Virus record (IMG/VR): IMGVR_UViG_3300046003_007892 | Location: 176,364-240,363 of that record | Reading direction: 5' to 3' (one strand) | DNA length: 64,000 nt | Shown here: piece after piece, positions 43,015 through 64,000 of the stretch | Layout: each line of letters opens with the position of its first letter | How positions within the stretch are numbered: position 1 is the first letter of the stretch | The notes under the pieces: model-generated | What the model was told of the DNA's origin: nothing | Database searches by the model: none | The model's input: the letters and a program-made list of their open reading frames with translations, nothing else | Program-made: the position numbers and the translations under genes

Positions 43015-43018
43015 CGTG

Positions 43019-43678
43019 ATGGAATACGCACACGTTCTCGAACTCGACCCCCAGACCCAGAAGGTAGCACTCGACCAGTTCGCCAAGCTGGCCGATGCCC
43101 AGCGCGGCGTTCCCGAAAACATGGGCGGAGGTGGGCCGTCTTCGATCAACCCCGCCAAGACGCATGCCTCCGGCCTTTGGCATCACGCTACTGAGCATAT
43201 CGGCGATCTCACCCACCGTATGGCCCAGCGCAACTGTGAACGGTGGGCCTTCGGCTATGAGTGGGTGGACCAGAAGGTGGTGGTTCAACTCCGGTCTCTG
43301 CGCTCCCGCTACGGCTACGAGAAAGAGGTCATGGAGAACCTCCGCAACAATCACCGATACTACAAGTCCCCCATGCCCTTCGAGCAGTGGGTCAAAGAAT
43401 GGGAAGAGGCTGGGGATAATTTCGCGCGCGCCCACAGGGCCCTCACGGTCTGGAACATCGCGCAGTACCATGCCCGCGAGGCCGCCATCGCCATCGGTGA
43501 GCGCAAATACGAGAAGACCATCAAGCACCTGTCGGAGCTTGAACAGCGTCTCGACACCGAGGAGAACTGGATTCGATACGCGGGTGGGTGCTGTCTGACC
43601 CCGGACGGTCTCGTCACCATGTACTCTCGCGGCATCCAGGAGTCCGCCTACGTGGACCGTCTGCTCAAGTCTCTCTAG
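43019..43678 (+). CDS. Putative virion-internal helical protein (EHxGDLxHR domain)
   Basis: Leader MEYAHVLE; homologous to middle domain of the 60026 protein. Confidence 0.7.
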   Translation: MEYAHVLELDPQTQKVALDQFAKLADAQRGVPENMGGGGPSSINPAKTHASGLWHHATEHIGDLTHRMAQRNCERWAFGYEWVDQKVVVQLRSLRSRYGYEKEVMENLRNNHRYYKSPMPFEQWVKEWEEAGDNFARAHRALTVWNIAQYHAREAAIAIGERKYEKTIKHLSELEQRLDTEENWIRYAGGCCLTPDGLVTMYSRGIQESAYVDRLLKSL

Positions 43679-48376: not shown

Positions 48377-48771
48377 GCGGCCTCGTAGAGGTCGTCGGCC
48401 ACGATGGGGTGGCCAGACAGTTCGAGCAGACGGAGGAACCAGTCCATGAACACCGGCCCATGGTCGAGACTGTGTCCATCACGGCCAGATAGGTAGTGGG
48501 CGAGTTCGTGCAGGACCACGGCCTTGTTCGACCACTCGCGGATGTAAATCCGCAGCGTGTCGTGGGTGACCAGCCCGAGGACGTTGGCCGCCTCCGGGGA
48601 GGTCCGCAGGCAGCGAACCTTCGGCTGCTCATAGCCGAGGCGGTCGCACAGTTCGCGAATGACCACGCGCGCCGCGCCGATGTGGAGCGGCGACGGGAAG
48701 CGTCTGAACAAGACCGCTTCCTGCCATGCATACACGCGCTGGGACTCGGGGCACTCGACCGCGTAAGTCAC
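48373..48771 (-). CDS. Zincin (SprT-like) metallopeptidase domain protein
   Basis: VVLHELAHY...HG.VF. Confidence 0.7.
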   Translation of the reverse strand: MTYAVECPESQRVYAWQEAVLFRRFPSPLHIGAARVVIRELCDRLGYEQPKVRCLRTSPEAANVLGLVTHDTLRIYIREWSNKAVVLHELAHYLSGRDGHSLDHGPVFMDWFLRLLELSGHPIVADDLYEAA

Positions 48772-50393
48772 ATCGCCTCCGGGACCTGGATGGTCAGGAG
48801 CCGCAGCGCGTAGTCGAGTTGGTGCTTAACCACCATGGTGAGATAGACCCGCGACGGGTCACCCAGCACGGTGGTGTGCGCGTAATAGGACGAGAACATC
48901 TGCGCGAGGTTGTAGGCATGATCGGCGATCATGTTCGGAGCCATCTTGTCACCGGCCGCCGCGATGATCTCGCGGAACCGATACAGGACCAGGGCGATGG
49001 CCTTTTCCTCCACCGTCGTGAGCTTCACGTCGAAGAACCGGAACCCATCGGGCATAGGGTCGGCCTTGCGCAGGATGGCGGCCATCCGAACGCTTTGATA
49101 GCAGAGATAGGGACCGGTCTTTCCCTCGAACGACAGGAAGCGGTCGAGGTCGAAGACATAGTTGGTCGAACGATGCGTCGAGAGATCGGCGAACTTGATG
49201 GCCGCCATCGCGATCAGTTCTGCCGTGATCGGGTCGGGGTTGCGCTCCAGGGCTTTCTCATAGGCGGCGTTGAGGAGATCGCCCAACTTAGGCGTTCCGC
49301 CGTCACGGGTCTTGAGAGGTTTGCCGTCCGGGCCGTTCACGGTGCCGAAGCCGACGTGGGTGAGTTTGACCTTGTCGGGCACGGTCTGGGCCACCTGCGC
49401 GACCTCGAAGAGTTGCTTGAAGTGCAGGGCCTGCCGTTGATCGACCACGTAGACGATCTCATCGGGGTCCCGAACCTTCCGGTCCTTGATGGTGGCGAGG
49501 TCGGTCGCAGCATAGAGGGCGGCGCCTTCGGAGTTGCGAAGGATGAGGGGCGTGTCGCCCGTGACCTTGACGATGATCGCACCATCGGACTCGACGGCGA
49601 TGCCCTGGTCGAGGAGTTCGTCGATCATGGGCTCCACCATGCCACCGACGCTGCTCTCGCCGTGCAGGGCGTCGAACGACACATCCAGCCGATTGATCTC
49701 CGGCAGGATGGCGGACTTGGTGAGTTCGACCAGCCGTTCCCAGATCGCGGTCGCGGCGGGTTGTTTGGTCTGAAGGCACATGACGGCTTTCTGCGCCGCC
49801 TTGCGGAAAGTCTCGTCGGCCTTCGCCCGTGCGCTGCACGCCGGATAAAGGGTTTCGAGATCGGCGAACGTCAGAGCGTCGAGGTCGATGCCGTCGATCT
49901 CGATGGCGGTGATCAGCAGGCCCATCTGGAGACCCCAGTCACCCCAGTGGATGTCGGAGATGACGTAGTTGTTCCGGGCCCGAAGGATGCGCTTGAGGCT
50001 CTCACCGATCAGCAGGGAGCGGAGGTGACCGACGTGCATCGGCTTGGCGATGTTGGGGCCGCCGTAGTCGAGAATGTAGGTCTTTCCGAACGTGGTCAGG
50101 CTCGGATTGGCCATCGCACGAATGACGTCCTCGACTGGAACCATGATGTTGATGTAGCCCGGCGCCACGGCCGAGAAGACGTAGTCGGACGGTGGAATCC
50201 CGGCGATGATTTTCTCCGCCAGTTCCAGCGGTTTCATCTTCATCTGTTTGGCGGCCCGAAGAGCCGCGACCGAAGTCAGGTCGGCGATCTCGGCCCGCTC
50301 GCTCCACTGGACATTCGCGGGGACGTCAACGCCAGCGGCTTGAAGGCCGCTGGCGAGCAGTTCGTTTACTTTGCTGAACAAATCCGACATCAC
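48768..50393 (-). CDS. argS: Arginyl-tRNA synthetase
   Basis: DYGGPNIAKPMHVGHLRS (HIGH), HWGDWGLQMG, YAATDLA, YVVD.RQ..HF, KPLKTR.G, SFEG.TGPYL.Y. Confidence 0.95.
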   Translation of the reverse strand: MMSDLFSKVNELLASGLQAAGVDVPANVQWSERAEIADLTSVAALRAAKQMKMKPLELAEKIIAGIPPSDYVFSAVAPGYINIMVPVEDVIRAMANPSLTTFGKTYILDYGGPNIAKPMHVGHLRSLLIGESLKRILRARNNYVISDIHWGDWGLQMGLLITAIEIDGIDLDALTFADLETLYPACSARAKADETFRKAAQKAVMCLQTKQPAATAIWERLVELTKSAILPEINRLDVSFDALHGESSVGGMVEPMIDELLDQGIAVESDGAIIVKVTGDTPLILRNSEGAALYAATDLATIKDRKVRDPDEIVYVVDQRQALHFKQLFEVAQVAQTVPDKVKLTHVGFGTVNGPDGKPLKTRDGGTPKLGDLLNAAYEKALERNPDPITAELIAMAAIKFADLSTHRSTNYVFDLDRFLSFEGKTGPYLCYQSVRMAAILRKADPMPDGFRFFDVKLTTVEEKAIALVLYRFREIIAAAGDKMAPNMIADHAYNLAQMFSSYYAHTTVLGDPSRVYLTMVVKHQLDYALRLLTIQVPEAM

Positions 50394-50437
50394 ATCCCTA
50401 TACCACGGTCAGTGGTGTTGTCGATGATTTTTTGGGT

Positions 50438-50893
50438 TTACGAAACCTTGTTGGTCTTCGCCAGACCGTAGAGGTAGCAGCCCCGCATCTGGTCGGCCAG
50501 TTCGGCGTAGGCGGCGAGGCGTTCCTGTTCGAGCAGGTTCGAGGTGACCGACGTCGAACGCTTCGGCGACTTGGCCATCTGGACGATGCGGTCCTGCATG
50601 TTCTTGCGGACGTATTCGAAATAGGCCGTCGAGTCGGCGATGCCGGACTCGACCGTCCCGCCAGCGGCGACCGCAGCGATATTGTCGCGGGTCATGATGG
50701 CCGACTTCAGGAAATCGTTGACGATGTCGAGCTTAGCGGCAGCTTCGAAGAGCTTGCCGCTCCATTCCAGCGTGCGCATCGGGGATTCGACGAGTTCCAT
50801 CGCGCCCAGCTTGATGGCCTGCTTGGAGGCGTCACGCATGGTTTCCAGGTGAGCGATGAAAAGGTCGAGATCGATTTGATCGGCTTCAAACAT
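50438..50893 (-). CDS. Hypothetical protein
   Basis: GAGGAG RBS; own promoter. Confidence 0.7.
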   Translation of the reverse strand: MFEADQIDLDLFIAHLETMRDASKQAIKLGAMELVESPMRTLEWSGKLFEAAAKLDIVNDFLKSAIMTRDNIAAVAAGGTVESGIADSTAYFEYVRKNMQDRIVQMAKSPKRSTSVTSNLLEQERLAAYAELADQMRGCYLYGLAKTNKVS

Positions 50894-50920
50894 GGTGTTT
50901 CTCCTCAGTTCCTAGAGCCG

Positions 50921-50948
50921 AAGATACACCACGTCAGTTTCTTGTCAA
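50921..50948 (-). promoter_or_regulatory. Sigma70-type early promoter
   Basis: Minus strand TTGACA-N16-TATCTT. Confidence 0.7.
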
Positions 50949-53236
50949 GTAAATGATTGCTCTTTTTCGCGCTTCTTCGATTTCGCACGAGCGGAGGACT
51001 TGGCGAACGTCATTCCGTCCACGAACTTGATGCGGTATTTGGAATGCAGATCGTTTTCCTCAATGAGGCGGTCCACAATCGCCATGGCCTCGAAGCTATA
51101 CCGGTAGCGGCTCACCAGCATGGAATTCAAGGTTCCGTCTTTCCACGCCCCGTAGTGGGCTTCAACGTCTTTGTCCCGAAGGAGCAAGAGACTGGAGCCA
51201 CGCGGAATTTTCAGGGACGGGGAGTTGACCAGCCATTCGGATTCATCGTTGAAAACTTTCGAGAGTCTCGCGAGCGCGTCCACCAGAGCGACCTGAATGT
51301 CTTCGACGCGCAGTTCGGTCTCGAAGTCCTGCGTGGACCAGTTGTTCCACTCTTTTGCCGCCGCCAGGAGGCTCTGGTAGAGGGCCTGGGAGAACTCCTG
51401 CGGGCTGTTCGGGCGGAAGCCCAAACGGTCGAACTCGTCTCCGGCCTTCCAGCCCAGATTGTTGTATTCGATGGCGTGGGCGACGTTGGGGTTGATCGAT
51501 TTCATGGTCGGCGTCATGTAACCGACGATGTTGTTGATCATGCCCGTGCGACCAAGCTTGGTCTCGGGGTCCTTCGCCCAGATGCGATAGATGGCGCGGA
51601 GGTTGTCGGCGCAGAGATAGTTGGGGTCATCGTAGGCGACCTTCTCGATCTTGTTAGCAGCGAACACAGCCTTGGGGTCCATGACGAGGCAGCAGTTGCC
51701 CGACGTATGGAAGAAGTTGAGCATGATCTGACGGCTGTCCGAGATGCCCTTGACGCCGTGGAGTTCCATGTTGGCGATGTCTTGAAGAGCCCGCATGCTT
51801 TGCTCGTGTTCGCGGTCGCTGGTCGGCAGGCGAGTGACGAGCCAGAACTTGGTCGGGTCGGTATTTTCGACCAAAGTCTTCTGACTTTCTTCGACCTCTT
51901 CTCGTCCGCGAATCATGCGCAGGAAAGAGGTGGTCTTCATCATTCTCTCAAGGCCCTGGCCCGAGGCCGTGAGGGCGTATCCTTCGAAGTTGATCAGCGA
52001 GCCGCCGCGCCAGTCGGTCCCTGCAATGTGGGGCTCGTGTGAGACGGGGAGGAAGATGTGGAAGCGGGTCGGGTAGTGATCATACGAAATCCCCAGTGCC
52101 TTCATGACGTTGAGGTGGATGTCCGCAGACGCTTGCCACACATAGGTGTTCTCGCCATCCGATACGCCTCGGAGATCGTCGCCTCGGTCCATCATGGCCA
52201 GCACTTCCGCCTTGCGGGGGTTCACGGTCACCTTGACGCCTTCGGCCCATTCGATGCGGCCTTCTGAGAGGTAGCCAGGACGCTTGCCTCCCAGCATGCA
52301 GATTTGCTCGCTCGCGCCTTCCTGGCGGGCTAGAGCGGTATAGAAGGCCGGGTTGGCGATGAAGGTGCCTTCGCCGCCGTAGATGGCCTCGGGGAGCATT
52401 GAGAGGGTCTCGTCGAGGAGGGTCGGACCCAGGAGTTCGGGAACCACCATACCGGAGCATCGGGCGAGATCGGCCGTCTCCGGGGTGACGTAGCCCCAGA
52501 GGGGGAGTTGCTGACTGGCGGTCTCGAACCCACGGAGGACCATCTCGGGCTTACCAACGGCGGCCATAACCTTGAACATCCCGCTGCCCTGCATGCGGGT
52601 CGCGAGGTATCCGGTCTTGTCGCCGTAGAAAGTCCAGTTGCGGGCTCGGCTCTCGAACTTGGCAGCCGTCCAGTCACCGAACACCCGATGGGCTTCCTTG
52701 ACCCCGATGGCGTTCGGGCCCGACGACGCACCTTCGAGGATGGCGTTCGTGCGCAGCTTTTTCTCTTTGGTCTTGTGCTTGCCCGTGGAGGGTTCGGCGA
52801 AAATCTCTGGCCCGAGCAGGATTTTGCCCCGGTAGGGTTCGATGCTTTCGATGTCGAGCTTGGAGCCGTTGTAGGTGATCGTGACGTGCGAGTTGTAGTC
52901 ATCAAACTTCCACGCGGCGCCGTGATCGAGAAAATCCTGCCAACGGGAGTTGAGGTGATCGTTCTGGATGGTGAGCACAATCGCGCCGCCATCGAACTCA
53001 ACGATCTCGCGCTTGTCTGCGTTCTTGACGCTAACTTCTTCTTTGCCCTTGCCGCATTCAGACCAGACTACTGGGTCCGCCGAATGGCAAACAGTGACGT
53101 GGAGGTTGGACATGACAGTCCTCATACCCTGCTCTTCTGCCCACTCTTCAATATCGGCAATGTTCAACACTTTCCTCTTTACATAAAGGGGTCGTGCTTT
53201 TGCTAGTTTCGAGGAGGCAAGTTCATCTAGTCGCAT
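50945..53236 (-). CDS. Multidomain protein: N-terminal Acb1/T4 gp57B-like 2H phosphoesterase, GNAT-like module, NP..LR..YVW module, possible ART-like C-terminal module
   Basis: Start MRLDEL (763 aa); PLYV.RKV, HVTVCHS, GA.WKFDDYNSHVTITYN, LGPEIFAE = two HxT motifs. Confidence 0.8.
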   Translation of the reverse strand: MRLDELASSKLAKARPLYVKRKVLNIADIEEWAEEQGMRTVMSNLHVTVCHSADPVVWSECGKGKEEVSVKNADKREIVEFDGGAIVLTIQNDHLNSRWQDFLDHGAAWKFDDYNSHVTITYNGSKLDIESIEPYRGKILLGPEIFAEPSTGKHKTKEKKLRTNAILEGASSGPNAIGVKEAHRVFGDWTAAKFESRARNWTFYGDKTGYLATRMQGSGMFKVMAAVGKPEMVLRGFETASQQLPLWGYVTPETADLARCSGMVVPELLGPTLLDETLSMLPEAIYGGEGTFIANPAFYTALARQEGASEQICMLGGKRPGYLSEGRIEWAEGVKVTVNPRKAEVLAMMDRGDDLRGVSDGENTYVWQASADIHLNVMKALGISYDHYPTRFHIFLPVSHEPHIAGTDWRGGSLINFEGYALTASGQGLERMMKTTSFLRMIRGREEVEESQKTLVENTDPTKFWLVTRLPTSDREHEQSMRALQDIANMELHGVKGISDSRQIMLNFFHTSGNCCLVMDPKAVFAANKIEKVAYDDPNYLCADNLRAIYRIWAKDPETKLGRTGMINNIVGYMTPTMKSINPNVAHAIEYNNLGWKAGDEFDRLGFRPNSPQEFSQALYQSLLAAAKEWNNWSTQDFETELRVEDIQVALVDALARLSKVFNDESEWLVNSPSLKIPRGSSLLLLRDKDVEAHYGAWKDGTLNSMLVSRYRYSFEAMAIVDRLIEENDLHSKYRIKFVDGMTFAKSSARAKSKKREKEQSFT

Positions 53237-53261
53237 TGGTTCCACTATACAGGGGTCGGGG

Positions 53262-53267
53262 TATTTA
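53262..53267 (-). promoter_or_regulatory. Putative late promoter TAAATA
   Basis: 25 nt upstream of ATG 53236. Confidence 0.55.
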
Positions 53268-53330
53268 TGACCAATTACCTGTGGGATATTTTGGTTGACC
53301 AAAGCCCGCCATTGCTGCATATGCGGGCCA

Positions 53331-53648
53331 ATGCGCCCCATATTTCTCGACGACATCCGCGTGCCGCGATCATCTCCGCCATCGGGCTGGTGGGTGGTCC
53401 TCCGCGATGCTCAGATGACGAAGGACTACATCCTCGAACACGGATGCCCGGACCACATCTCGTTCGACCATGACCTCGGAGACCCTAAGGCCGAGACCGG
53501 CTATGACGTGGCGAAATGGCTCGTCGAGATGGACCTCGATAAGCCCGGCTTCCTCCCAGAGAATTTCACGTTCGCCGTCCACAGCGCGAACCCCGTGGGC
53601 GCCAAGAACATCCGCGAATATCTGACCGCCTACCTGGGTGTCCGATGA
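53331..53648 (+). CDS. Cyclic-phosphate-processing receiver (cREC) domain protein
   Basis: IFLDDIR.P, ISFDHDLG, TGYDVAKWL, VHSANPVG..NI. Confidence 0.8.
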   Translation: MRPIFLDDIRVPRSSPPSGWWVVLRDAQMTKDYILEHGCPDHISFDHDLGDPKAETGYDVAKWLVEMDLDKPGFLPENFTFAVHSANPVGAKNIREYLTAYLGVR

Positions 53649-53959
53649 GCGATCAAATCCGAGATTTCAGAACCAACTCGGAAATGCCGTGGTATCTCTT
53701 CTCCGAGCATGAGCCGGAGATCGGGCAAATGATCTGGATACTCGTCGAGGAGGATACCTGCGACGACGAGTCCTATCCCGACATCCGCAAAGTGGTCGCG
53801 AAGATCATCTCCGACGAGAACGGCGATCACTGGGTCTTCGAACTCCTGGACTGGGACGTAGACATCGACGGTCCCGGCCACCGGGGCGCGGGCTATCTCA
53901 ATGGCAACTGGCACACCGTCAAGGCATGGCGGGCAATGACCATCACGGGTGACGTATGA
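53645..53959 (+). CDS. Hypothetical protein
   Basis: ATGA overlap. Confidence 0.6.
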   Translation: MSDQIRDFRTNSEMPWYLFSEHEPEIGQMIWILVEEDTCDDESYPDIRKVVAKIISDENGDHWVFELLDWDVDIDGPGHRGAGYLNGNWHTVKAWRAMTITGDV

Positions 53960-54339
53960 CGCAATATTCGGGACGAACCACCGCCTCTGTGCACAAGTTC
54001 GATGACTGGGCCGAAAAGGACGTCAGCGGCGTCGCACCGGCAATTCGCCAAATCTATCTGTTCGAAGTTCAGTGGAGCGATTGCCCGGTGGAAGTCGAAA
54101 CAGAAGTCAAGAAGCTCTGGCGATGGCAAGAACTCGGCAACGATTTCTATTATTTCTCGTGGGACCGCGACGCCGACGCCTACATTGGCGAAGACGAACT
54201 CCGCGACGGCGGGAGGACGGCGAACCCTATCGGGGGCGTGATCGGCGAAGACTCAAAACTTCACCTCGTCTTCCCGATGATCGACGAGTACCTGATGAGC
54301 AAGGGCGTCGAGAAATGCCTCATTCACTGGTGGTGGTAA
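53956..54339 (+). CDS. Hypothetical protein
   Basis: ATGA overlap; ends CLIHWWW. Confidence 0.65.
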   Translation: MTQYSGRTTASVHKFDDWAEKDVSGVAPAIRQIYLFEVQWSDCPVEVETEVKKLWRWQELGNDFYYFSWDRDADAYIGEDELRDGGRTANPIGGVIGEDSKLHLVFPMIDEYLMSKGVEKCLIHWWW

Positions 54340-54340
54340 G

Positions 54341-54679
54341 ATGTTCTGGAAAAAGAAAAAGGTCACCGAGATCACTGCACCGGTTCCCGATGAACCCCGC
54401 GTCCGCACCGTCGTGTTCGATGCCGACACGTTGGAGCGCGCCTATCGCGATGTGAAGCATGTCGGGTTCTCGCGCTCAGTGATGAACTCCGACAACGTCC
54501 TGGCTCTCCTCATGCTGGCCAGAATGGGGCTCGAAACAGTGCCGGGGAAAGTCTTCACGCTGTCGATCACGACCGGCGCGGCCAGTCTGGATTCTCTGGC
54601 CGACGTGGCTGGGGTGCCCCAGATGCGTCCGGCAACTCCTTCAGAGGTGTTCGAAGAATTGCACCCGCCGCTCAGTTAG
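54341..54679 (+). CDS. Hypothetical protein
   Basis: Abuts upstream stop. Confidence 0.55.
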   Translation: MFWKKKKVTEITAPVPDEPRVRTVVFDADTLERAYRDVKHVGFSRSVMNSDNVLALLMLARMGLETVPGKVFTLSITTGAASLDSLADVAGVPQMRPATPSEVFEELHPPLS

Positions 54680-55257
54680 GGGAACCGCTGCACCCAGCGT
54701 TCACCAGCCGCGATCACCGCCATCGTTTCGGCGTCGTTTGGAAGGGCTTCACGAACGCATTCGCAGTAGCGGGCGAAACCTGCTCGGTCGATCATCAGGC
54801 CCGTGATGTAGCGGTCCAGGTTGTTCACGTCGCCGAAGACGCATTCTTCGAGTTCGTCATCCCCGTCGCCAAAATCCACCATTTCGAGACCATCGCTGTG
54901 GAAGCATACGGAAAAGAACTCGTAGTCTCGGTGTAGGGCTTGTCGGTTGAACTCCATGACTACGCCTTGGCCACCAGCAATCATTTCTGCTTTGTGGGAT
55001 ACGAGTTCGTGATCTTCCTCGAACTTGGTGTAATCGAAATCGCTATACTGGGATAGCTGGCCCCGCCGAGCGAGATCAATTGCGCTCCCGCAGAAACGCT
55101 TCGCGACCTCGGGGTCGAGGGTGAAGCTAGCTTGGTCTTCGCCGCCGTAGGCGCCAATCATGTTGTGATGTGCAATGAAGCAGAACCCCGTCATGGACGT
55201 CCCGTGATAGAGATGCGCCGGACGCTGTGATTCCGTCAGATTCATCCACTCGCGCAT
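54676..55257 (-). CDS. ADP-ribosyltransferase-fold protein
   Basis: Leader MREWMNLTE; LYHGTS, SFTLDPEVAKRF, GVVMEF, DELEECV. Confidence 0.65.
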   Translation of the reverse strand: MREWMNLTESQRPAHLYHGTSMTGFCFIAHHNMIGAYGGEDQASFTLDPEVAKRFCGSAIDLARRGQLSQYSDFDYTKFEEDHELVSHKAEMIAGGQGVVMEFNRQALHRDYEFFSVCFHSDGLEMVDFGDGDDELEECVFGDVNNLDRYITGLMIDRAGFARYCECVREALPNDAETMAVIAAGERWVQRFP

Positions 55258-55258
55258 G

Positions 55259-55582
55259 TTAGCCCACAGTCTTCCTGATCGCGCGGTTCTCAGCCATGGC
55301 GATGGCCTCGGCCTTGCGGAGCAACAGGAGATCGAGGCCAAGCGACTTGAACTCTTCCTTGATGTCGCCCTGGAGGGTCAACCAGTCGTCGCCAACGCGC
55401 TTCATGATGGCGGTTCCGGCCGGGCGCCGGTTGTAGAAGACCGTGTAGGCGATGTTGTCTCCAACGCGCTCTTCTTCGATATTCACGAGCTTCATATCCG
55501 CAGAGACGTCTTCGTCAATCTGCTGGACGGGGAGTTTGAGCGTGGGGTCGATGCGCTTGTAGTGTTCGAGGAAGCTGGGCAT
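55259..55582 (-). CDS. Hypothetical protein, GNAT-like fragment
   Basis: Leader MPSFLE; IKEEFKSLGL..LL...AE. Confidence 0.6.
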   Translation of the reverse strand: MPSFLEHYKRIDPTLKLPVQQIDEDVSADMKLVNIEEERVGDNIAYTVFYNRRPAGTAIMKRVGDDWLTLQGDIKEEFKSLGLDLLLLRKAEAIAMAENRAIRKTVG

Positions 55583-55586
55583 GGCT

Positions 55587-55592
55587 TATTTA
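55587..55592 (-). promoter_or_regulatory. Putative late promoter TAAATA
   Basis: 4 nt before ATG 55582. Confidence 0.6.
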
Positions 55593-55868
55593 TGCCAGAC
55601 GAAGCTTCCATTCGAAAAAACACGCCTGTGCACGGACGAGATCGCTTGCTTGGGTGAAGTGCCAGGGTCGCCCTATTCCTCGCATGACTGACCAGCCGGG
55701 ACCGAATACGGCGTCGGACGTGGTGCCGTGGTGAACCCAAACTCCGATCTCGTCCATTACCGCTCGTCCATCAATGATATAGCGATGGATGGCACGGCTA
55801 GGCCGCGTGATCTTCACCCACTCACGCAGGATTTCGAGGTTCTCCGGCGTGAGTGGGTGTTCGGTCAC
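55590..55868 (-). CDS. Hypothetical protein
   Basis: GTGA overlap with cca stop; start VTEHPL. Confidence 0.5.
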   Translation of the reverse strand: MTEHPLTPENLEILREWVKITRPSRAIHRYIIDGRAVMDEIGVWVHHGTTSDAVFGPGWSVMRGIGRPWHFTQASDLVRAQACFFEWKLRLA

Positions 55869-57100
55869 AGGCCCTGTTTGGCCAGCAGGCCGTTCAGGAA
55901 GTCGTTGGTGCGGTTCATGTCGAACCAGACCTTGACCCATTCTTCTTCGGTCGCGCGCAGGATGTCGCCCATGGCCTTGCCGGGCTTCATGCCACGGTCG
56001 ATCAGCATCGCCCCCGAGATCGGGAACACGCGGGGAGCCAGACGGCCCACCTTGTTGATCTGATCGGCCAGCGTATCGAAATCGAACGGCAGGCCACAGG
56101 CCCAGGTCAGGGCCATGCGGTCACGAACGGCCACGACGCCATCGCGGTAGATGTGCTGCTCGATGCTGTCGAACCACGCGTCTCCGCCCATCTCGGTGAA
56201 CGGTCCCTGCTTGATCGCGTTGGTGACCCGCTGACGCGAGGCGTTCGAGAACCGCAGGCGAGCCATGACGTCCCCGCAGGCCTGCATATCCCAGTTGAAC
56301 AGGGAGGCGAAGCGGGGGGCCCAGTCGGTCGTGGCTTGACAGACGCGGGTGAACACACGGGCGTCAAACGCGACCGGGAAGATGGTCGAGTAGACCTCGG
56401 TGCGCTGCATGGCCTCCAGAGCGGGGACGGGGTTGCCCGCGCCCAGCAGCTTGGAGATTTCCTTCTCGATGCGTTCGCCGGACAGGCTCGCGATTCCGTC
56501 CCGTTGCGCCTTGCAGGCGGCCAGGGCTTCGGCGGAGATGTCCGCACCCAGAACCGCCATGAAGCGGAACAGGCGCAGGCTGCGCAGGTGATCTTCGCGC
56601 AGACGCTGCTCGGCGTCGCCGACGAACTGGATACGACGGGCCTTGGCGTCTTCAATGCCGCCGCGCGTCGGGTCATAGACGGTTCCGTCCGGGCCCAGAT
56701 ACAGGGCGTTGAAGCGGAAGTCGCGACGTTGCGCGTCTTCGGCCCAGTCCTTCGTAAAGGCGATCACGGCGCGGCGGCCATCGGTCTCGACGTCGCGGCG
56801 CAGCGTCGTGAACTCGTAGGCGGTCTTGTTGATGATGACCGAGACCGTGCCGTGCTCGATGCCCGTGGGGATGACATCGAAACCTTCCAAGCGGAAGATG
56901 TCCGAGATCAGCGTGGGTTCCAGAGTGGTGGCGATGTCGATGTCGCCGCACTGGCGGCCCATGATGGAGTCACGCACGCACCCGCCGACGAAGCGGTAGG
57001 AATCCGCAGGCGCATGCACATCCATGATCGCGATGATCGATTGGATGGCCGGGGTCGAGAACCAATCCGGGCGCAGGGTCAGGGTCTTCGGCGTGCTCAT
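55865..57100 (-). CDS. cca: CCA tRNA nucleotidyltransferase (class II)
   Basis: FVGGCVRD, DIDIATT, GIEHGTV, EFTTLRRDVETDGRRA, DAQRRDFRFNALY, EDHLR.LR.FRF, SGERI..E..KLL. Confidence 0.92.
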   Translation of the reverse strand: MSTPKTLTLRPDWFSTPAIQSIIAIMDVHAPADSYRFVGGCVRDSIMGRQCGDIDIATTLEPTLISDIFRLEGFDVIPTGIEHGTVSVIINKTAYEFTTLRRDVETDGRRAVIAFTKDWAEDAQRRDFRFNALYLGPDGTVYDPTRGGIEDAKARRIQFVGDAEQRLREDHLRSLRLFRFMAVLGADISAEALAACKAQRDGIASLSGERIEKEISKLLGAGNPVPALEAMQRTEVYSTIFPVAFDARVFTRVCQATTDWAPRFASLFNWDMQACGDVMARLRFSNASRQRVTNAIKQGPFTEMGGDAWFDSIEQHIYRDGVVAVRDRMALTWACGLPFDFDTLADQINKVGRLAPRVFPISGAMLIDRGMKPGKAMGDILRATEEEWVKVWFDMNRTNDFLNGLLAKQGL

Positions 57101-57166: not shown

Positions 57167-57577
57167 ATGTATCTAATGGCCAAATCAGAATACGTTCTCC
57201 GCATCGAAGAGCAATACGGCGCGACCCACATCGCCTATATGGAGGTGAACGGGCGCGACATGGACGTCTTCTATCAGCCCAACCCCAAGACCGAACTCGG
57301 TCACTCGAACTATTTCGGCATTCTCATGCAGGGTTCGAGCTTGATGATCACTCAAGCGCGTCGTGTCCAGGATGAAACATACCCGGCCATCATCATCGAC
57401 AACACGCTGATGACCACCCTTCGGAATCATGACTTTCAGATGCACGCCAGTGGTGCCATGCTTGATGGCGGCCCCGGCTATGGACGCATCAATCCCGATT
57501 TCGCCCCCGATGGCGTTCTCCGGGTCGTGGGCGACAAACTCGCCTTCGTCGGCCGGGTCAAGCCAGACCCTAAATGA
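57167..57577 (+). CDS. Hypothetical phage protein
   Basis: DVFYQPNP...GHSNYFGI, LDGG.GY. Confidence 0.65.
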   Translation: MYLMAKSEYVLRIEEQYGATHIAYMEVNGRDMDVFYQPNPKTELGHSNYFGILMQGSSLMITQARRVQDETYPAIIIDNTLMTTLRNHDFQMHASGAMLDGGPGYGRINPDFAPDGVLRVVGDKLAFVGRVKPDPK

Positions 57578-57632
57578 CTCGTGGGCAACAAGCTCGTCTT
57601 CGTTGGACGCATCAAACCAGACCCCAAATGAC
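57525..57632 (+). repeat. 54-bp tandem duplication spanning a stop/start junction
   Basis: 57525-57578 vs 57579-57632, 9 mismatches. Confidence 0.85.
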
Positions 57633-58008
57633 CGCAGCAGCAAATGACCCTCGTATCTGTGAAGGCCGCAGTCGGTACTGGTGGTCGGGCTATGATGATC
57701 GCATGCGGGCGAAGCCTTACTCCATCCAGACTACTGGCTCGGATTGGCGGGCTGGGTGGGCGACTGCCGACCACTCACACAACGACATCGGCATCATGGA
57801 AGGGGTTGACTGCTTCCTGGTCAACATCCCCGATCTCAAAGACGTGCATGTCCTAAACGAGGTCGTAGAATGGATGAAAGCGAGGGGCGTTGAAACGCCA
57901 CCTCGCTCGTATGAACTTTGCTTGACTCGTGGGCGGGCGGGTCAACTGACGGTTTTTGCTCTTCCGACCTACGAACTCGCCTTCGAGTTTTTCGCCACGT
58001 TCGGCTAA
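57628..58008 (+). CDS. Hypothetical protein (start 57628 or 57574)
   Basis: ATGA overlaps; ends FALPTYELAFEFFATFG. Confidence 0.6.
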   Translation: MTAAANDPRICEGRSRYWWSGYDDRMRAKPYSIQTTGSDWRAGWATADHSHNDIGIMEGVDCFLVNIPDLKDVHVLNEVVEWMKARGVETPPRSYELCLTRGRAGQLTVFALPTYELAFEFFATFG

Positions 58009-58392
58009 TTAGTTGTCGTAGGGGTCGATGCCGTTCCACAGGTGATTGCCATAGGAATCGCCTGCGTTGTCCTGACCGTCTTCGCGATGAGTGATCGGGA
58101 TGCCCATACGGTCGGTTCCAGAATAACCGGAATGCCCATCGTCGCTATAGGCGGAGCCGACTGCACCCAGGCCGGGGTTCGAGATACCGGCGTTTTCCAG
58201 AGCCGCAACGGCGACGTTGTAAAGACCCAGAGCGGCGGCGGCATAGAGGAACAGCTTGGCGAGTTTGTTTTTCCCGCCGCTTTCTGCGAGAATTTTGTCC
58301 ATCGCCTCTGCGAGGAGGTCTTTCGACTTCGACTTGGATTTTGACTCCACGAGAGGCGTTTTGGCCTCGATGATGTCGATCAAATTTCTCAT
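58009..58392 (-). CDS. Small protein with LxE leader and hydrophobic helix
   Basis: MRNLIDIIE..PLVE..LLAE; AAAGGA RBS. Confidence 0.65.
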   Translation of the reverse strand: MRNLIDIIEAKTPLVESKSKSKSKDLLAEAMDKILAESGGKNKLAKLFLYAAAALGLYNVAVAALENAGISNPGLGAVGSAYSDDGHSGYSGTDRMGIPITHREDGQDNAGDSYGNHLWNGIDPYDN

Positions 58393-58417
58393 AACAGTGA
58401 TCCTTTAGGTTTTGATT

Positions 58418-58423
58418 TATTTA
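58418..58423 (-). promoter_or_regulatory. Putative late promoter TAAATA
   Basis: 25 nt upstream of ATG 58392. Confidence 0.5.
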
Positions 58424-58495
58424 TCTTTTCGCCAACGAAACGACGACGACAATCTCGTCAACCAAAAGAAAAATCGAAATGACGCATTTTTCGTA

Positions 58496-58524
58496 TTGCG
58501 TTCGTTGGGGCCGATGCGTAGAAA
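58496..58524 (+). promoter_or_regulatory. Putative promoter of large ncRNA copy 1
   Basis: TTGCGT-N17-TAGAAA, mirrored at 59559. Confidence 0.5.
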
Positions 58525-58530
58525 GAGATT

Positions 58531-58923
58531 GTTCCGGCGGCGGACGGCTTCGGCCCCCTCCCCAACGAGGTCATCGAAAGGCTTCCTCGTTGCACGCGAA
58601 CCTCGCTACTGACCGGCTTCGGCCGCCATCAGATCACGGTGAGGCCAGCACGGAGCGCGACCTACTGTGCTTCGGCATTACTGGTCGTATTCAGAACGGT
58701 CGCTCCGTTCTGGGTTCCGGTATACTCGCGCCGTAAGTGGTGAGTGGGCCAAGACAGGGCTCGACTGGTTTGAGACCAGCTTCTGGGGTTGAGAACACCC
58801 TGACCTGATGCGATAACCTCGCGAAGGTGAACAGACTCCGGCCTCTTTCTAGGGCCGCTGACATCGCCCAGCAAGGCATGCCCAGTTAAGGGCCGGAAGA
58901 CCTGAACCATCTTCCGGCCCTTA
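58531..58923 (+). ncRNA. Candidate large structured ncRNA, copy 1 (~390 nt)
   Basis: Three cUUCGg hairpins, multiple 5-8 bp stems, 14-bp terminal hairpin, homology to 59594-60002, no credible ORF. Confidence 0.65.
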
Positions 58924-58966
58924 GATTTATTTGGGGTCTGGTTTTGCTGTCTGGTATAACGGCGGC

Positions 58967-59176
58967 ATGATCACCAAGACCCTAGACGGCACACCGCTCA
59001 GCGAAGAAGCCGCACAGAAACTCGCGATGTTCAAGGCCATGGCGCAGGCCCGTCAGGACGCCATGGAGGAAGCCGAGCAGAATCGCTCGCGGCTCGACCG
59101 GAAAGGCGTGCGGGTCTTCACTGAAGCCGAGAAAGCAGCCTTCCTGGCGTCGCGCCCGGACCTCAAAGCCTCATAG
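58967..59176 (+). CDS. Small hypothetical protein, probably leaderless
   Basis: TATAAC 6 nt before ATG (MITKTLDG). Confidence 0.6.
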   Translation: MITKTLDGTPLSEEAAQKLAMFKAMAQARQDAMEEAEQNRSRLDRKGVRVFTEAEKAAFLASRPDLKAS

Positions 59177-59486
59177 TAAAATATTCCAAACAGCATTCCG
59201 TCCAACCATCGGCGTCCGGGATGTCTACCTGCATCACGCCGACGAGGTCGTAGATCGATATCGTGATATCAAACTTTGACTGGTCAGCGGGGAACGCCAC
59301 GCCTCGTAGAAATACGTTTGGATATGTTCGCCCACCAACGTGGTAAACGATTCGTGTCGGCTCGACTTTCCGATCTAGGGCGTAATCCATGGCAACCGCC
59401 CACAGGGGTCGGTCATCGACAGGGACTCGCAACGCCTCGACGCGGCAACTGGGGGCGTGGCGGAGTTCAGGCGTCATCGTTTTCAT
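59163..59486 (-). CDS. Hypothetical protein
   Basis: Start MKTMTPEL; TATAAAT upstream. Confidence 0.5.
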   Translation of the reverse strand: MKTMTPELRHAPSCRVEALRVPVDDRPLWAVAMDYALDRKVEPTRIVYHVGGRTYPNVFLRGVAFPADQSKFDITISIYDLVGVMQVDIPDADGWTECCLEYFTMRL

Positions 59487-59558
59487 CTCTAGGCTGGGCT
59501 GACATTTATACCCCAAATCGTCAACCCAAACAAAAATCGAAATCGCTGCATTTTCTTG

Positions 59559-59587
59559 TTGCGGCCCTCGGAGGAGATGGGTAGAAA
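59559..59587 (+). promoter_or_regulatory. Putative promoter of large ncRNA copy 2
   Basis: TTGCGG-N17-TAGAAA. Confidence 0.5.
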
Positions 59588-59593
59588 GAGATT

Positions 59594-60002
59594 GTTCCGG
59601 CAGCGGACGGCTTCGGCCCCCGCCGCCACGGAGAAACCCGAAAGGGCCAACACGAAGAAGGAAGGGGTTCGCCCCAACCCGAAGGAACTAAAGGACAGCG
59701 GATAACACCCGATGGCCTCAAGGACTGGAATACCGAAGTGACGAGAACGGCCCTCGAAACCGTTCGCAAGACCCTGGTCTCAAGTCACGTAGGATACGGT
59801 CTAATCCGAGGGCTCACATCGTAAAGTGGGCAGGCTCAGCTAGGGCCGATATACCGGTTTGAACCCCGGCTAGCTAGGGCCAGAAGCCCCTACCGTCTCA
59901 CGACGGAAATCACCTTCTAGGCCTCTTGCTTAGGCCTTATGTGACGCGAACGCGTCGCCCACATATTAAGGGCCCGTGGACATGATTAGCCACGGGCCCT
60001 TA
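59594..60002 (+). ncRNA. Candidate large structured ncRNA, copy 2 (~410 nt)
   Basis: UUCG and GAAA tetraloop hairpins, 13-bp terminal hairpin, homology to 58531-58923, no credible ORF. Confidence 0.65.
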
Positions 60003-60015
60003 GCTTGTCTGGGCC

Positions 60016-60021
60016 TAAATA
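60016..60021 (+). promoter_or_regulatory. Putative late promoter TAAATA
   Basis: 4 nt before ATG 60026. Confidence 0.6.
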
Positions 60022-60025
60022 TGAG

Positions 60026-61531
60026 ATGCGTCGGTTCATCGATCTCTCTGAGAAATTCCACCACGGCTTCGTCCCGACCTACAATCGCGGTAAGCCCTGC
60101 GAGGTGTTCAAGAACCCCGACCGGTCTGAGGTCCGCAAGCTGAAGGCCGATATGGATGAGGTTCGCGCCTATCTGGTTGGCGACGACATCTTTATGTGGA
60201 ACACCTATCAGTCCCTGCACCGCACGGTGCACGACGAACTCAAGCTTCCTGCTGACGCTCTCCCGATCATCATCTACGGCGACGTGGACGACGAGGCCTC
60301 GGTTGTGGTCACCGACGCGAGTAGGTCCACGGTCTGGCACCATAATGCCGAGACGCGTGGAGCCATCATGGCCCATCCCTACTTTGCCCGCTGCGAAGAC
60401 GTCGAAGTCTCTTACTATGACGAAGCCATCGTCGGACAATGGCATGACCCCAAAGGCGAGAACGAGGATTTCGTTGCTCATTTCATGGGTGATGAATACG
60501 GCGACGACAGTATCGACCATGGTGCCGAAGACCCCGACGACGATGGCTTCACCGACGAAGAGCGGGCCCTGCACGAGGGCATGGCCCTGAACCTCTTTGA
60601 ACTCTCGGGCCCGTCTCAAGAAGCAGCTAATCAGAAATTCGCCGCCTATGCGAAGAGCCAACGAAACGGCAAGCCCGAACTCTTCGGCACGTCACAGCGG
60701 GCCAACCCAGGCCTCTTTCACGGCACCGGCTATTTCACCTGGATGTGTGAGCACGTCGGTGATCTCTCCCACCGCATCGCCGACAACGCCGTCAACTCCA
60801 CCTGCGGGTTCGAGACCATGAACGAGAAAGTCGGGAAGGCTCTCGACAAGCTCCGCTCAGGCTCCTTCGGCCGCACGTTCGCGAGGACGGTAGTGGAAAA
60901 TGTTCGAAACAATTATCATTACGGAGTTGAGGTCGGTCGCACGACCGGCTCCTTCGAGGAGTTCGAGACCGAGTGGCGCGACGCCTCCAAGCTCTATGGC
61001 GCCGCACACGCTGCCCTCCAGCCCTTCAACGATGCCCAGATGCATTGTCGGGATGCGGCGGTCGCGCTCGGGAACCATGACTGGCTGAAATGCCTGAAGC
61101 ATCTCGAAGTCCTCGCGGCCCACCTCGTAGATCGCGAATCCTGGCAGGCCTACGCTGGGGCCTTGGCCTTCACTCAAAATGAGAGCTTTCGCGGACGTCT
61201 GCCATTCGACCCCGAAGACGCAGTGACGAACCCGAGCGCGAAACGTCTGATGGCCATGGTGAAGAATGCCACCCATCAGGATTTGCGCGGCCTCTACGAC
61301 GGAACCAACCTGTATTTCTGGGACGCCAGCCTTGGCGTTCACTCCCACGTCGCCCCGGCGATTGGTCTCGAATACGATTATCTCAAGAGGCTCAACGTCG
61401 ATATCGTTTACGGCGGCGTGGAGATCACATGGGACGAGGGTGTGCCCAAGGAGGCCATCGCGAAACGATACGGTGACCTGGGTCGATTCAAGACCGCCCA
61501 GACCTTCGAGTTCGAGGGTGCCCTGTCATGA
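60026..61531 (+). CDS. Modular putative virion-internal protein (A-B-A architecture)
   Basis: Leader MRRFIDLSE; two NP..LR..YFW modules flanking an EHVGDLSHR module. Confidence 0.75.
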   Translation: MRRFIDLSEKFHHGFVPTYNRGKPCEVFKNPDRSEVRKLKADMDEVRAYLVGDDIFMWNTYQSLHRTVHDELKLPADALPIIIYGDVDDEASVVVTDASRSTVWHHNAETRGAIMAHPYFARCEDVEVSYYDEAIVGQWHDPKGENEDFVAHFMGDEYGDDSIDHGAEDPDDDGFTDEERALHEGMALNLFELSGPSQEAANQKFAAYAKSQRNGKPELFGTSQRANPGLFHGTGYFTWMCEHVGDLSHRIADNAVNSTCGFETMNEKVGKALDKLRSGSFGRTFARTVVENVRNNYHYGVEVGRTTGSFEEFETEWRDASKLYGAAHAALQPFNDAQMHCRDAAVALGNHDWLKCLKHLEVLAAHLVDRESWQAYAGALAFTQNESFRGRLPFDPEDAVTNPSAKRLMAMVKNATHQDLRGLYDGTNLYFWDASLGVHSHVAPAIGLEYDYLKRLNVDIVYGGVEITWDEGVPKEAIAKRYGDLGRFKTAQTFEFEGALS

Positions 61532-63485: not shown

Positions 63486-64000
63486 ATGCGAACTATCGAA
63501 CTTTTCGAAGCTCCCCTTGGACGGGTCCGTATCACCCGGACTCTCTCCGAAGACACGGCAGCGGCGCCGCCGCAGAAATGGCCCGCGCGTCTGGACGATT
63601 CGCGCATGATCGCCCGCTACATGGACAGCATCAGCAGCGACTACGTCGATGTCGATATGGTGGAGGAATACCTCCAAGGCGCACACGCCGATCTCAAGCT
63701 CGTCCCCATCGACGAACTCTCCGAGGGAAACCAGGACGCCAACATCCGAGACCCTCGCAAGGAAGCAAAATATTCGAAGCTCGATATGGCTACCATGCCG
63801 CCCCTGGTCGTACAGGACGGCGTCATCCTCGACGGTAATCACCGCTACCGTATAGCCAAAGCGAAGGGCGTCACCGCGCTGTGGTGCTATGTCTGCGACG
63901 ACTCCCTCACTGAGGTCGAGATTGGCGGCTACATCGAGAAGGGTGACTTTCCCGACAACCTCGACGACGACGATCTCTCCAGCGATCAGCTAGACCTGTC
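63486..64000 (+). CDS. ParB/sulfiredoxin-like domain protein, 3'-truncated (absent from ORF track)
   Basis: My translation: MRTIELFEAP...MPPLVVQDGVILDGNHRYRIAKAKG...LWCYV; open to window end. Confidence 0.75.
   Translation, partial: MRTIELFEAPLGRVRITRTLSEDTAAAPPQKWPARLDDSRMIARYMDSISSDYVDVDMVEEYLQGAHADLKLVPIDELSEGNQDANIRDPRKEAKYSKLDMATMPPLVVQDGVILDGNHRYRIAKAKGVTALWCYVCDDSLTEVEIGGYIEKGDFPDNLDDDDLSSDQLDL

Follow-up and report, generated by a model that had tools for sequence, protein, structure and literature searches.

Two neighbouring gene-free loci in a giant phage appear to encode a pair of related, structured RNAs

The gene-free loci and their shared elements

The DNA analysed here, referred to as the window, is a 64,000-nucleotide stretch of a 240-kb IMG/VR phage contig (IMGVR_UViG_3300046003_007892) that also carries tail-fibre, GroEL and CCA-adding enzyme genes. 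Two regions of the window, copy A (58455-58926) and copy B (59518-60004), lie within gaps at 58393-58930 and 59487-60025 that were gene-free in independent gene calls on the same contig and that were the largest gaps in this 16-kb neighbourhood. The gaps follow divergent genes, one of which encodes a 127-aa protein upstream of copy A, and the plus-strand genes downstream (58931/58967-59176 and 60026-61531 onward) start 7-43 nt and 23 nt after the terminal hairpins. The CCA-adding enzyme gene lies 1.4 kb from A. The predicted features of both copies are listed in Table 1.

Table 1. Features of copies A and B, with window coordinates. C1 and C2 are the two copies in the second carrier, whose 20.5-kb locus is designated L172.
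Position	Strand	Feature	Supporting observation
58455-58495	+	Copy A upstream block: TCGTCAACC followed by an A-rich stretch, UP-element-like (inference); on the minus strand TCGTCAACC reads GGTTGACGA, which contains a TTGACG -35-like hexamer facing the divergent 127-aa gene (divergent promoter inferred)	Unique to the two copies in the window; B and C2 share a related form
58496-58524	+	Copy A promoter-like element: TTGCGT (58496-58501), 17-nt spacer, TAGAAA (58519-58524)	Same two hexamers and 17-nt spacing in all four copies, with unrelated spacer sequences
58518-58558	+	Near-invariant 5' block of copy A with a GGC-UUCG-GCC hairpin; transcription start predicted near 58528-58531 (inference)	One mismatch to copy B; 33 of the first 37 nt invariant in A, B, C1 and C2
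58528-58926	+	Predicted RNA A (type 1), about 400 nt: 5' block, variable middle, 3' run of about six short hairpins including a UUUGA-loop hairpin (58765-58779)	Apparent ortholog is C1, L172:10637-11196
58886-58924	+	Terminal 15-bp hairpin of RNA A, followed by AUUUAUUU; terminator-like	Stem kept in all four copies through changes on both sides
58925-58944	+	U/G-rich tail after the hairpin; also one arm of a 16-nt perfect inverted repeat with 57614-57629	Conserved between A and C1; blastn 58882-58944 against L172:11152-11213, 81% identity
59518-59558	+	Copy B upstream block (TCGTCAACC followed by an A-rich stretch)	77% identical over 137 nt to the region upstream of and into C2
59559-59587	+	Copy B promoter-like element: TTGCGG (59559-59564), 17-nt spacer, TAGAAA (59582-59587)	As for copy A
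59591-60004	+	Predicted RNA B (type 2), about 415 nt: 5' block (59581-59621), CCC-GAAA-GGG hairpin, GGGG-UUCG-CCCC hairpin, GAACGG/CCGUUC hairpin, 3' run of hairpins	Apparent ortholog is C2, L172:11311-11758
59966-60003	+	Terminal 14-bp hairpin of RNA B; weak U tract (GCUUGUCU)	59981 C>A, in the loop, is the only polymorphism inside either RNA among nine contigs of this phage

To determine whether the two regions are duplicated units, repeat finding and alignment were performed. The repeat finder matched 58455-58567 to 59518-59630 at 81% identity over 113 nt, and within this match the 41-nt 5' blocks differ at a single position. A 20-nt piece of that block, when up to 3 mismatches were allowed, occurred only at these two sites in the 64-kb window and never in 100 shuffles, and the upstream block TCGTCAACCNAAANAAAAATCGAAAT also occurred only at these two sites. 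Both copies contain TTGCG-N18-TAGAAA (TTGCGN, a 17-nt spacer and TAGAAA). The colinear islands were also all in the alignment: the GAACGG/CCGTTC stem, the GGCCTCTT hairpin, TGAC...TCGCCCA, and the terminal TAAGGGCC...GGCCCTTAG hairpin. The duplicated units that the initial annotation described are real and lie where it placed them. Its statement that stems capped by UUCG or GNRA loops occur on the plus strand only was partly right. Five of the window's 27 plus-strand stem-UUCG-stem hairpins fall in these 820 nt, where about 0.35 would be expected, but copy B also has three UUCG/GNRA-type hairpins on the minus strand, and single-sequence folding was equally good on both strands with z values of about -3.

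Translated similarity between the copies appeared in all six frames and only over the shared 5' nucleotides, so it is not protein conservation. To determine whether the copies belong to a described RNA family, the window was searched with the Rfam 15 models, which include GOLLD, ROOL, OLE, raiA, HEARO, RNase P, tmRNA, SRP, 6S, group I and II introns and T-box. No match was obtained at gathering score in the whole window, and at E up to 10 on 58300-60100 there were only four chance-level hits at 13-23 bits, none of them over the RNA bodies. ARAGORN, which also detects permuted two-piece tmRNA, found no tRNA or tmRNA gene in the window. No iterons or tandem repeats were found in the locus, no CtrA box or GANTC site was evident in the upstream block, and literature searches found no description of these RNAs.

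A second carrier of the pair

Homologs were sought by sequence patterns, by protein neighbours and with a covariance model. Three patterns across the 5' block, scanned against IMG/VR, found only the source contig plus chance hits, and blastn of A, B, and C1 with C2 against 50,697 phage records found no match. A single Nocardia match to a variant pattern with nine instead of eight unspecified positions was attributed to chance. A covariance model of the 5' domain, run on the hits of a metagenome pattern scan, found a true homolog at 72.8 bits in a metagenome locus (L086), in which ARAGORN found only tRNA-Leu and tRNA-Val, outside the RNA. The neighbouring NADAR protein led to an unrelated-looking 521,890-bp ENA scaffold with phage-like genes, which holds two tandem copies, C1 and C2, scoring 57.8 and 80.4 bits. 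A search of L172 with the Rfam models at E up to 1 matched only two tRNAs, at 9706-9906 beside C1, and tRNA-Leu and tRNA-Val lie 0.7-0.9 kb from C1.

Searches through other neighbouring proteins gave no further carriers. The downstream 508-aa protein has one distant relative, on a contig that is not syntenic and has no RNA, while the upstream 127-aa protein has none outside this phage. Relatives of the phrog_12504 protein lie in unrelated phages without the RNA, Brevundimonas phage Bajun has no comparable gap, and 80 IMG/VR loci with a NADAR gene have no RNA. Nine contigs of the source phage are at least 99.9% identical and are of no use for covariation. Public runs that carry the phage are SRR35488161, SRR27419979, SRR35488121, SRR27420180, the JGI samples 3300046002/3, 3300042889/92 and 3300059473, and ENA ERZ28617863. 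The family consists, on present evidence, of four distinct sequences from two phage lineages.

The RNA loci are the only nucleotide-level similarity between the 20.5-kb locus and the window, and the shared proteins are only 41-54% identical. In the promoter-like element, all four copies keep TTGCGN-N17-TA(G/C)AAA. Copies within one phage are the least alike: over nt 35-110, identity was 47% for A-B and 53% for C1-C2, compared to 60% for both A-C1 and B-C2. A resembles C1 and B resembles C2, so the duplication is old and both types were kept. C1 is followed by the promoter of C2 rather than by a protein gene, and the genes that follow B and C2 are unrelated. An A+T-rich 70-nt stretch follows C2, but no such stretch follows B.

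Conservation of the predicted structure

Folding of the individual copies gave z values of -3.1, -3.2, -4.2 and -4.6. Consensus folding against column shuffles gave z values of -7.8 for A+C1, -6.5 for B+C2 and -5.1 for all four, although the ortholog-pair alignments folded as well on the minus strand. The middle of the A-B alignment, in contrast, gave z of -3.9 on the plus strand and 0.0 on the minus strand. Compensatory changes were observed between CCC-GAAA-GGG and CCG-GAAA-CGG, between GGGG-UUCG-CCCC and CAGC-UUCG-GCUG, between GAACGG/CCGUUC and GGUCGG/CCGAUC, and between CUGG/CCAG and CCGG/CCGG around a conserved UUUGA loop.

A model trained on B and C2 only found A (36.5 bits, E 9e-8) and C1 (29.4 bits, E 6e-6). 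On that alignment 94.1% of cells pair and 13 of 32 pairs changed on both sides, which was reached by 0 of 500 shuffles, while slid controls gave 29-48% paired. However, these counts come from an alignment fitted to the model, and four sequences are too few for an R-scape-type covariation test. With two sequences, the number of compensatory pairs barely exceeded re-predicted shuffles, as 1 to 7 of 100 shuffles reached it for the ortholog pairs and 29 of 100 for A-B. A Sankoff-type alignment raised consensus energy but broke obviously homologous islands, and it was not relied upon. A loop-to-5'-end pairing (AGAAAGAG with CUCUUUCU) was seen in A and B but was rejected because it is not kept in C1. 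No consistent long-range closing helix was found across the four copies, no pseudoknots or multi-way junctions are established, and duplex folding of A with B was uninformative. The terminal stems are 13-15 bp and G+C-rich in all four copies, but only A has a clear U-rich tail, and a terminator consensus scan did not call any of them.

Interpretation and related systems

The initial annotation proposed a paralogous pair of a new, large, structured non-coding RNA class in a phage, and our data support this core inference. Two outcomes named in advance as capable of refuting it did not occur: no known Rfam family matched, and the homologs keep the predicted helices with compensatory changes, within the limits of four sequences. 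The more detailed parts of the proposal are weaker. An ornate tertiary complexity and a GOLLD/ROOL-like assembly are not shown, since what is seen is mostly a string of short hairpins, and the description of the neighbours as late cargo genes remains an assumption because they have no recognisable function.

The reading that we favour, with moderate confidence, is that A and B are two genes for related, stable, highly folded non-coding RNAs of a family not yet described, which giant phages of probable alphaproteobacterial hosts keep side by side. The sequence family, its conservation as a pair in two phage lineages and a conserved helix pattern come directly from the analysis, whereas transcription, transcript ends, strand and function are inferred from sequence alone. 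In this view, each gene would be read on the plus strand by the host sigma-70-type polymerase from its own promoter preceded by an A-rich UP-like stretch, and the transcript would start a few bases after the second hexamer. It would begin with an almost invariant handle of about 30 nt, consisting of a single-stranded AUUGUUCC and a G+C-rich hairpin with a UUCG loop. A variable middle would follow, then a run of about six short hairpins whose stems change while staying paired, and finally a 13-15-bp hairpin that stops transcription or protects the 3' end. Because the handle is identical in both types and both phages while the bodies have drifted to about 55-60% identity, we infer that one shared partner, which could be a protein, the polymerase or another RNA, recognises the handle, and that the two bodies do non-redundant jobs in trans. 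The jobs could be those of scaffolds or decoys, possibly tied to tRNA or translation, given the neighbouring genes. The invariant block, however, begins inside the predicted -10 hexamer, so part of its conservation may serve the promoter or early elongation rather than the mature RNA.

A more speculative and rather unlikely possibility, which the evidence leaves standing, is a two-component RNA system. The type-1 and type-2 RNAs, kept together since before the two giant-phage lineages split, would assemble with each other or on one shared partner into a large RNA or RNA-protein particle that acts on the host's tRNA or translation machinery, or on a defence system. That would make a new class of large phage RNAs, unrelated to GOLLD and ROOL.

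Among the alternatives, the one that survives best, although we consider it unlikely, is that these are cis-acting leaders. The invariant block would be a polymerase-modifying element, in the manner of the HK022 put RNAs or a lambda Q-utilisation site, or the whole leader would be a sensor, and in either case it would decide whether transcription passes the terminal hairpin into the downstream genes. The downstream genes have no room for promoters of their own and follow divergent genes, so they probably depend on read-through from the RNA promoters. Conservation peaks from the -10 hexamer to about +30, each unit ends in a strong hairpin just before the next gene, and two homologous copies behind two promoters in one phage recall putL and putR. 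The position of C1 ahead of another RNA gene argues against a plain 5' leader, as do the unrelated genes downstream of B and of C2. In addition, the bodies keep about six further hairpins through compensatory change, which a promoter-proximal element would not require, and no Q-like or other antiterminator gene was recognised nearby.

A role as origin-associated transcripts or as a DNA-level element is very doubtful. In this reading the twin promoters and G-rich transcripts would prime or activate replication, as with ColE1 RNA II or the tandem promoters at the T7 primary origin, or the inverted repeats would act as DNA. The locus sits where gene orientation and cumulative GC skew switch, with the maximum near 56-60 kb, the 16-nt inverted repeat flanks copy A and two genes, both strands fold equally well, and the A+T-rich stretch follows C2. 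However, GC skew in phages mostly follows gene orientation, iterons and an A+T-rich unwinding stretch after B are lacking, and the compensatory pattern includes G-U pairs and UUCG loops enriched on one strand. The least likely reading, a known RNA family too diverged for the models or the remains of duplicated protein genes or small leader peptides, rests on a length close to that of RNase P RNA and on a short reading frame that starts at the UUG inside the block in B and C2 (37 and 31 codons), and it is opposed by the Rfam, ARAGORN and six-frame results, by differences between the B and C2 frames that change the amino acid and sit in paired positions, and by the absence of an ATG and of a Shine-Dalgarno sequence at a usable distance.

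Large structured phage RNAs are already represented by GOLLD and ROOL, which, like the RNAs predicted here, are phage-encoded, several hundred nucleotides long and without a known protein partner or function, and which are heavily structured, as folding predicts for the present RNAs. GOLLD and ROOL are described as "often near tRNA islands" (bioRxiv 10.1101/2024.12.08.627333), and the present loci likewise lie near tRNA genes (C1) or a tRNA enzyme gene (A). The present RNAs match neither Rfam model, are smaller (400-550 nt), and occur as a conserved pair of two types with an invariant 5' end, which is not a described feature of GOLLD or ROOL. Tandem paralogous base-pairing sRNAs, such as OmrA/OmrB of enterobacteria and AbcR1/AbcR2 of alphaproteobacteria, are likewise adjacent and in the same orientation, with near-identical 5' ends and diverged middles, and they have similar terminator hairpins and a promoter for each gene, as is predicted for the present pair. 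Those RNAs are about 80-120 nt with a short seed, whereas the predicted RNAs are four to five times longer and keep conserved hairpins in the middle. Only chance-level 9-mers complementary to the 5' block occur in the window and L172, a search that did not extend to host genes, and no convincing complementary target was found in either phage locus. The put RNAs of HK022 are two homologous structured elements directly downstream of two promoters and ahead of terminators, but they are about 70 nt, made of two stem-loops, with no conserved body after them. The position of the present block, from about +1 to +30 of the predicted transcript with a terminator-like hairpin downstream, fits such an element, whereas the size and the conserved body of 400-550 nt do not, and C1 precedes no protein gene.

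Large structured RNAs of unknown function are rare, and each new class has opened a field. GOLLD, ROOL and OLE were recently shown to form RNA-only assemblies (bioRxiv 10.1101/2024.12.08.627333). The present family is short enough to transcribe in vitro, comes as two types that can be tested alone and together, and has an invariant 30-nt handle that can serve as bait for its partner. If the cis-acting reading is right instead, this would be a new, large antitermination or attenuation element in phages of alphaproteobacteria. The family also adds to the repeated finding that giant phages place unexplained structured RNAs next to tRNA genes and tRNA enzymes, which hints at a shared and still unknown theme in how phages take over translation.

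Source phage and the paired non-coding units

The window is the last 64 kb of the 240,363-bp IMG/VR contig IMGVR_UViG_3300046003_007892, and it carries phage genes that include a 1390-aa tail-fibre protein with an Mtd_N domain, GroEL, a TerC/DUF475 membrane protein, an Acb1/2H-phosphoesterase-domain protein, a CCA-adding enzyme and an arginyl-tRNA synthetase. The CCA-adding enzyme is closest to those of phages of Ruegeria, Agrobacterium, Brevundimonas and Caulobacter, at 29-35% identity, and the protein at 57176-57577 has relatives only in phiCbK-like phages. The host is therefore probably an alphaproteobacterium. The same phage, at least 99.9% identical over 58000-60100, occurs on nine contigs from JGI and Logan samples. 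L005, a 119.5-kb Logan contig of the same phage, continues 4.4 kb beyond the end of the IMG/VR contig, and therefore the end of the 240-kb contig is not a physical genome end, or the genome is permuted or terminally redundant. A cluster of tRNA and RNA-end enzymes lies just upstream of the RNAs, yet there is no tRNA gene in the 64-kb window.

The observation made in the initial annotation, that two gene-free regions carry homologous structured units, holds. Units A and B share a 113-nt stretch at 81% identity, a 41-nt block with one mismatch, colinear islands and a terminal 14-15-bp hairpin. Pieces of the block occur nowhere else in the window and in none of 100 shuffles. Independent gene calls leave the regions around both units empty, and the translated similarity between the units is frame-independent and confined to the shared nucleotides. 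The flanking proteins of A and B are unrelated to each other, so only the non-coding units were duplicated. The further claim that tetraloop-capped stems are found on the plus strand only is half right. UUCG hairpins are strongly enriched on the plus strand, with 5 of the window's 27 located in 820 nt, but B also has three tetraloop-type hairpins on the minus strand.

A 16-nt perfect inverted repeat (AAACCAGACCCCAAAT / ATTTGGGGTCTGGTTT), with arms 1299 nt apart, brackets two genes and RNA A. Its left arm lies in a 54-nt tandem duplication that spans the junction of the 133-aa and 126-aa genes, and its right arm is the tail conserved between A and C1, a copy in a second carrier described below. 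The sequence 'ACCCCAAAT' also sits just before copy B. This could be an inversion or recombination scar. In addition, the 501-aa protein encoded after RNA B looks like a fusion, as its N-terminal and C-terminal parts match two separate proteins on the Logan contig L004 and the C-terminal part has a paralog elsewhere in the window. No function was found for this protein.

Coordinates of the RNA units and of associated features in the window and in related contigs
Feature	Sequence	Position	Strand
Unit A	window	58455-58926	
Unit B	window	59518-60004	
Region without gene calls at A	window	58393-58930	
Region without gene calls at B	window	59487-60025	
Inverted repeat, left arm	window	57614-57629	
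Inverted repeat, right arm	window	58929-58944	
54-nt tandem duplication	window	57525-57632	
ACCCCAAAT before copy B	window	59509-59517	
tRNA and RNA-end enzyme cluster	window	48768-57100	
Arginyl-tRNA synthetase	window	48768-50390	minus
741-803-aa protein with Acb1/2H-phosphoesterase domain	window	50945-53356	minus
cREC_REC protein	window	53331-53648	
CCA-adding enzyme	window	55865-57100	minus
501-aa protein after RNA B	window	60026-61531	
Paralog of its C-terminal part	window	42986-43678	
Protein with ParB-like nuclease motif	window	63486-64000 (continues in L005:3864-4907, minus strand)	
Continuation beyond the IMG/VR contig	L005	1-4392	
Copy C1, about 560 nt	L172	10637-11196	plus
Copy C2, about 448 nt	L172	11311-11758	plus
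Stretch inside C1 resembling the 5' block	L172	about 10825-10900	
GcrA-family protein	L172	7130-7531	
Two tRNA genes	L172	9706-9906	
Protein with ParB-like nuclease motif	L172	14379-16706	
C1 promoter and 5' block joined to C2 body	L086	1-219	
Gene-free gap, about 618 nt	L067	4796-5414	
Gene-free gap, about 618 nt	L068 and L069	8831-9449	

Homologs in a second carrier

To determine whether the units belong to a known RNA family, they were compared with the Rfam 15 models, which gave nothing in the window at gathering score and only chance-level hits at the locus at E values up to 10. ARAGORN found no tRNA or tmRNA gene in the window. Close relatives of the phage are very rare. The two flanking proteins that were searched have one distant homolog and none, respectively, among 5.8 billion proteins, and IMG/VR and the cultured-phage collection hold no other copy of the RNAs.

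A pattern scan of metagenome contigs gave 21 loci, from which a covariance model of the 5' domain picked exactly one at 72.8 bits. This locus, L086 (ENA ERZ941671 NODE_7540), is a 1.9-kb contig in which the RNA lies beside a NADAR gene and tRNA-Leu and tRNA-Val. Looking up that NADAR protein by identity led to a 521,890-bp scaffold (ENA ERZ28617863), from which the locus L172 was taken. The scaffold is absent from IMG/VR and is taken as a phage on gene content alone, which is phage-like: many small unknown genes, RlaP, SprT-like, tRNAs and a GcrA-family protein, an alphaproteobacterial cell-cycle regulator. The two tRNA genes lie next to the NADAR gene that precedes C1, and L172 has no Rfam match apart from these tRNAs.

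L172 holds two tandem copies, C1 and C2, each with its own promoter-like element and terminal hairpin. C1 is about 150 nt longer than A and contains an internal stretch (CCGGCGGTGCTGGATTTCGGTCC...) that resembles the 5' block and its following hairpin; MAFFT aligned the 5' domain of A to this stretch rather than to the true start of C1, and it looks like an internal partial duplication. In the L086 assembly, the promoter and 5' block of C1 are joined directly to the body of C2, giving a single copy. Either this is a natural deletion by recombination between the identical 5' blocks, or the assembler collapsed the repeat. Unrelated T4-like ENA contigs (L067, L068 and L069) each have a gene-free gap between small genes.

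Comparison of the four copies showed that 33 of the first 37 nt are invariant, and that all four have TTGCGN, exactly 17 nt of unrelated spacer, and then TA(G/C)AAA, with A-rich sequence upstream. This is the footprint expected of a two-hexamer promoter. The RNA loci are the only nucleotide-level similarity between L172 and the window, while the few shared proteins are 41-54% identical, and the RNAs are therefore under much stronger constraint than their surroundings. The only loosely syntenic protein is one with a ParB-like nuclease motif (DGNHRYR), which lies 3.6-4 kb downstream of the pair in both carriers and is 54% identical over 83 aa. Otherwise the neighbours differ.

The copies within one carrier are the least alike. 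In nt 35-110, the identity is 47% for A-B and 53% for C1-C2, compared to 60% for A-C1 and 60% for B-C2, and in the last 170 nt the figures are 58% and 54%, compared to 67% and 61%. The flanks agree, as the upstream region of C2 matches that of B and the tail of C1 matches that of A. Although this conclusion rests on modest differences in identity, the duplication is older than the split of the two carriers, and both types (type 1, A and C1; type 2, B and C2) were kept in the same order.

Predicted secondary structure of the RNAs

To determine whether the RNAs are structured, the folding energy of each was compared with that of its shuffles, and each folds better, with z of -3.1 for A, -3.2 for B, -4.2 and -4.6 for the other two copies. 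On MAFFT alignments made without regard to structure, the consensus energy beats column shuffles, with z of -7.8 for A+C1, -6.5 for B+C2 and -5.1 for all four. When A was compared with B after removal of the shared block and the terminal hairpin, z was -3.9 on the plus strand and 0.0 on the minus strand. However, the ortholog pairs do not discriminate between strands.

Individual hairpins keep the loop and change the stem. These include CCC-GAAA-GGG against CCG-GAAA-CGG, GGGG-UUCG-CCCC against CAGC-UUCG-GCUG, GAACGG/CCGUUC against GGUCGG/CCGAUC, CUGG/CCAG against CCGG/CCGG around UUUGA, a hairpin with an AAGACAG loop, and the terminal stem. The 3' domain is a run of about six hairpins present in all four copies. 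As a cross-check, a covariance model built only from B and C2 was found to recover A at 36.5 bits and C1 at 29.4 bits, at the homologous place. On the resulting four-sequence alignment, which is fitted to the model, 94.1% of cells pair and 13 of 32 pairs have changes on both sides; none of 500 shuffles reaches this, and sliding the partners drops pairing to 29-48%. With only two sequences, the count of compensatory pairs is only weakly above re-predicted shuffles, and no consistent long-range closing helix emerged.

Probable mode of action and relation to known RNAs

The interpretation proposed in the initial annotation, a paralogous pair of a new class of large structured non-coding RNA, survives each of the tests that could be applied, with independent support from the second carrier. 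What the sequences themselves establish is the family and its occurrence as a pair in both carriers, and folding into the hairpin series is supported, while transcription, the promoter, the 3' end and any function are inferred from sequence. With moderate confidence, we favor separately transcribed, stable, structured RNAs that act in trans. In this view, host sigma-70-type polymerase would start at the TTGCGN-N17-TA(G/C)AAA element, the RNA would begin with the invariant 5' handle and fold into the hairpin series, and it would end at, or be protected by, the terminal hairpin. In contrast to what is expected of a pure 5' leader, C1 is followed by the promoter of C2 and not by a protein gene, and the genes after B and after C2 are unrelated.

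The main alternative, which we consider possible but less likely, is a cis-acting antitermination or attenuation element. It is kept alive because the downstream genes in the window have no room for promoters of their own, because the invariance starts inside the predicted -10 hexamer, and because three of the four terminal hairpins lack a good U tract, with none of them called by a consensus terminator scan. The two readings are not exclusive, as partial read-through of a stable-RNA gene would serve both. Origin-associated transcripts or a DNA element are unlikely, and a missed known family or coding remnants are the least likely.

In kind, the RNAs are nearest to GOLLD and ROOL, which are likewise phage-borne, large, structured, of unknown function and near tRNA genes (bioRxiv 10.1101/2024.12.08.627333). 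There is no homology to either, the present RNAs are smaller, and the resemblance does not extend, on present evidence, to complex tertiary structure or multimers. In gene layout, they resemble tandem seed-sharing sRNA pairs such as OmrA/OmrB or AbcR1/AbcR2, but they are four to five times longer with a conserved body. They are not members of any of these families.

In summary, the paired RNAs are best read as a new RNA family, similar in broad kind to large phage RNAs already described but with an unusual conserved arrangement of two types. The handle is identical across types and carriers while the bodies diverged, which points to one common partner for the handle and distinct roles for the two bodies.
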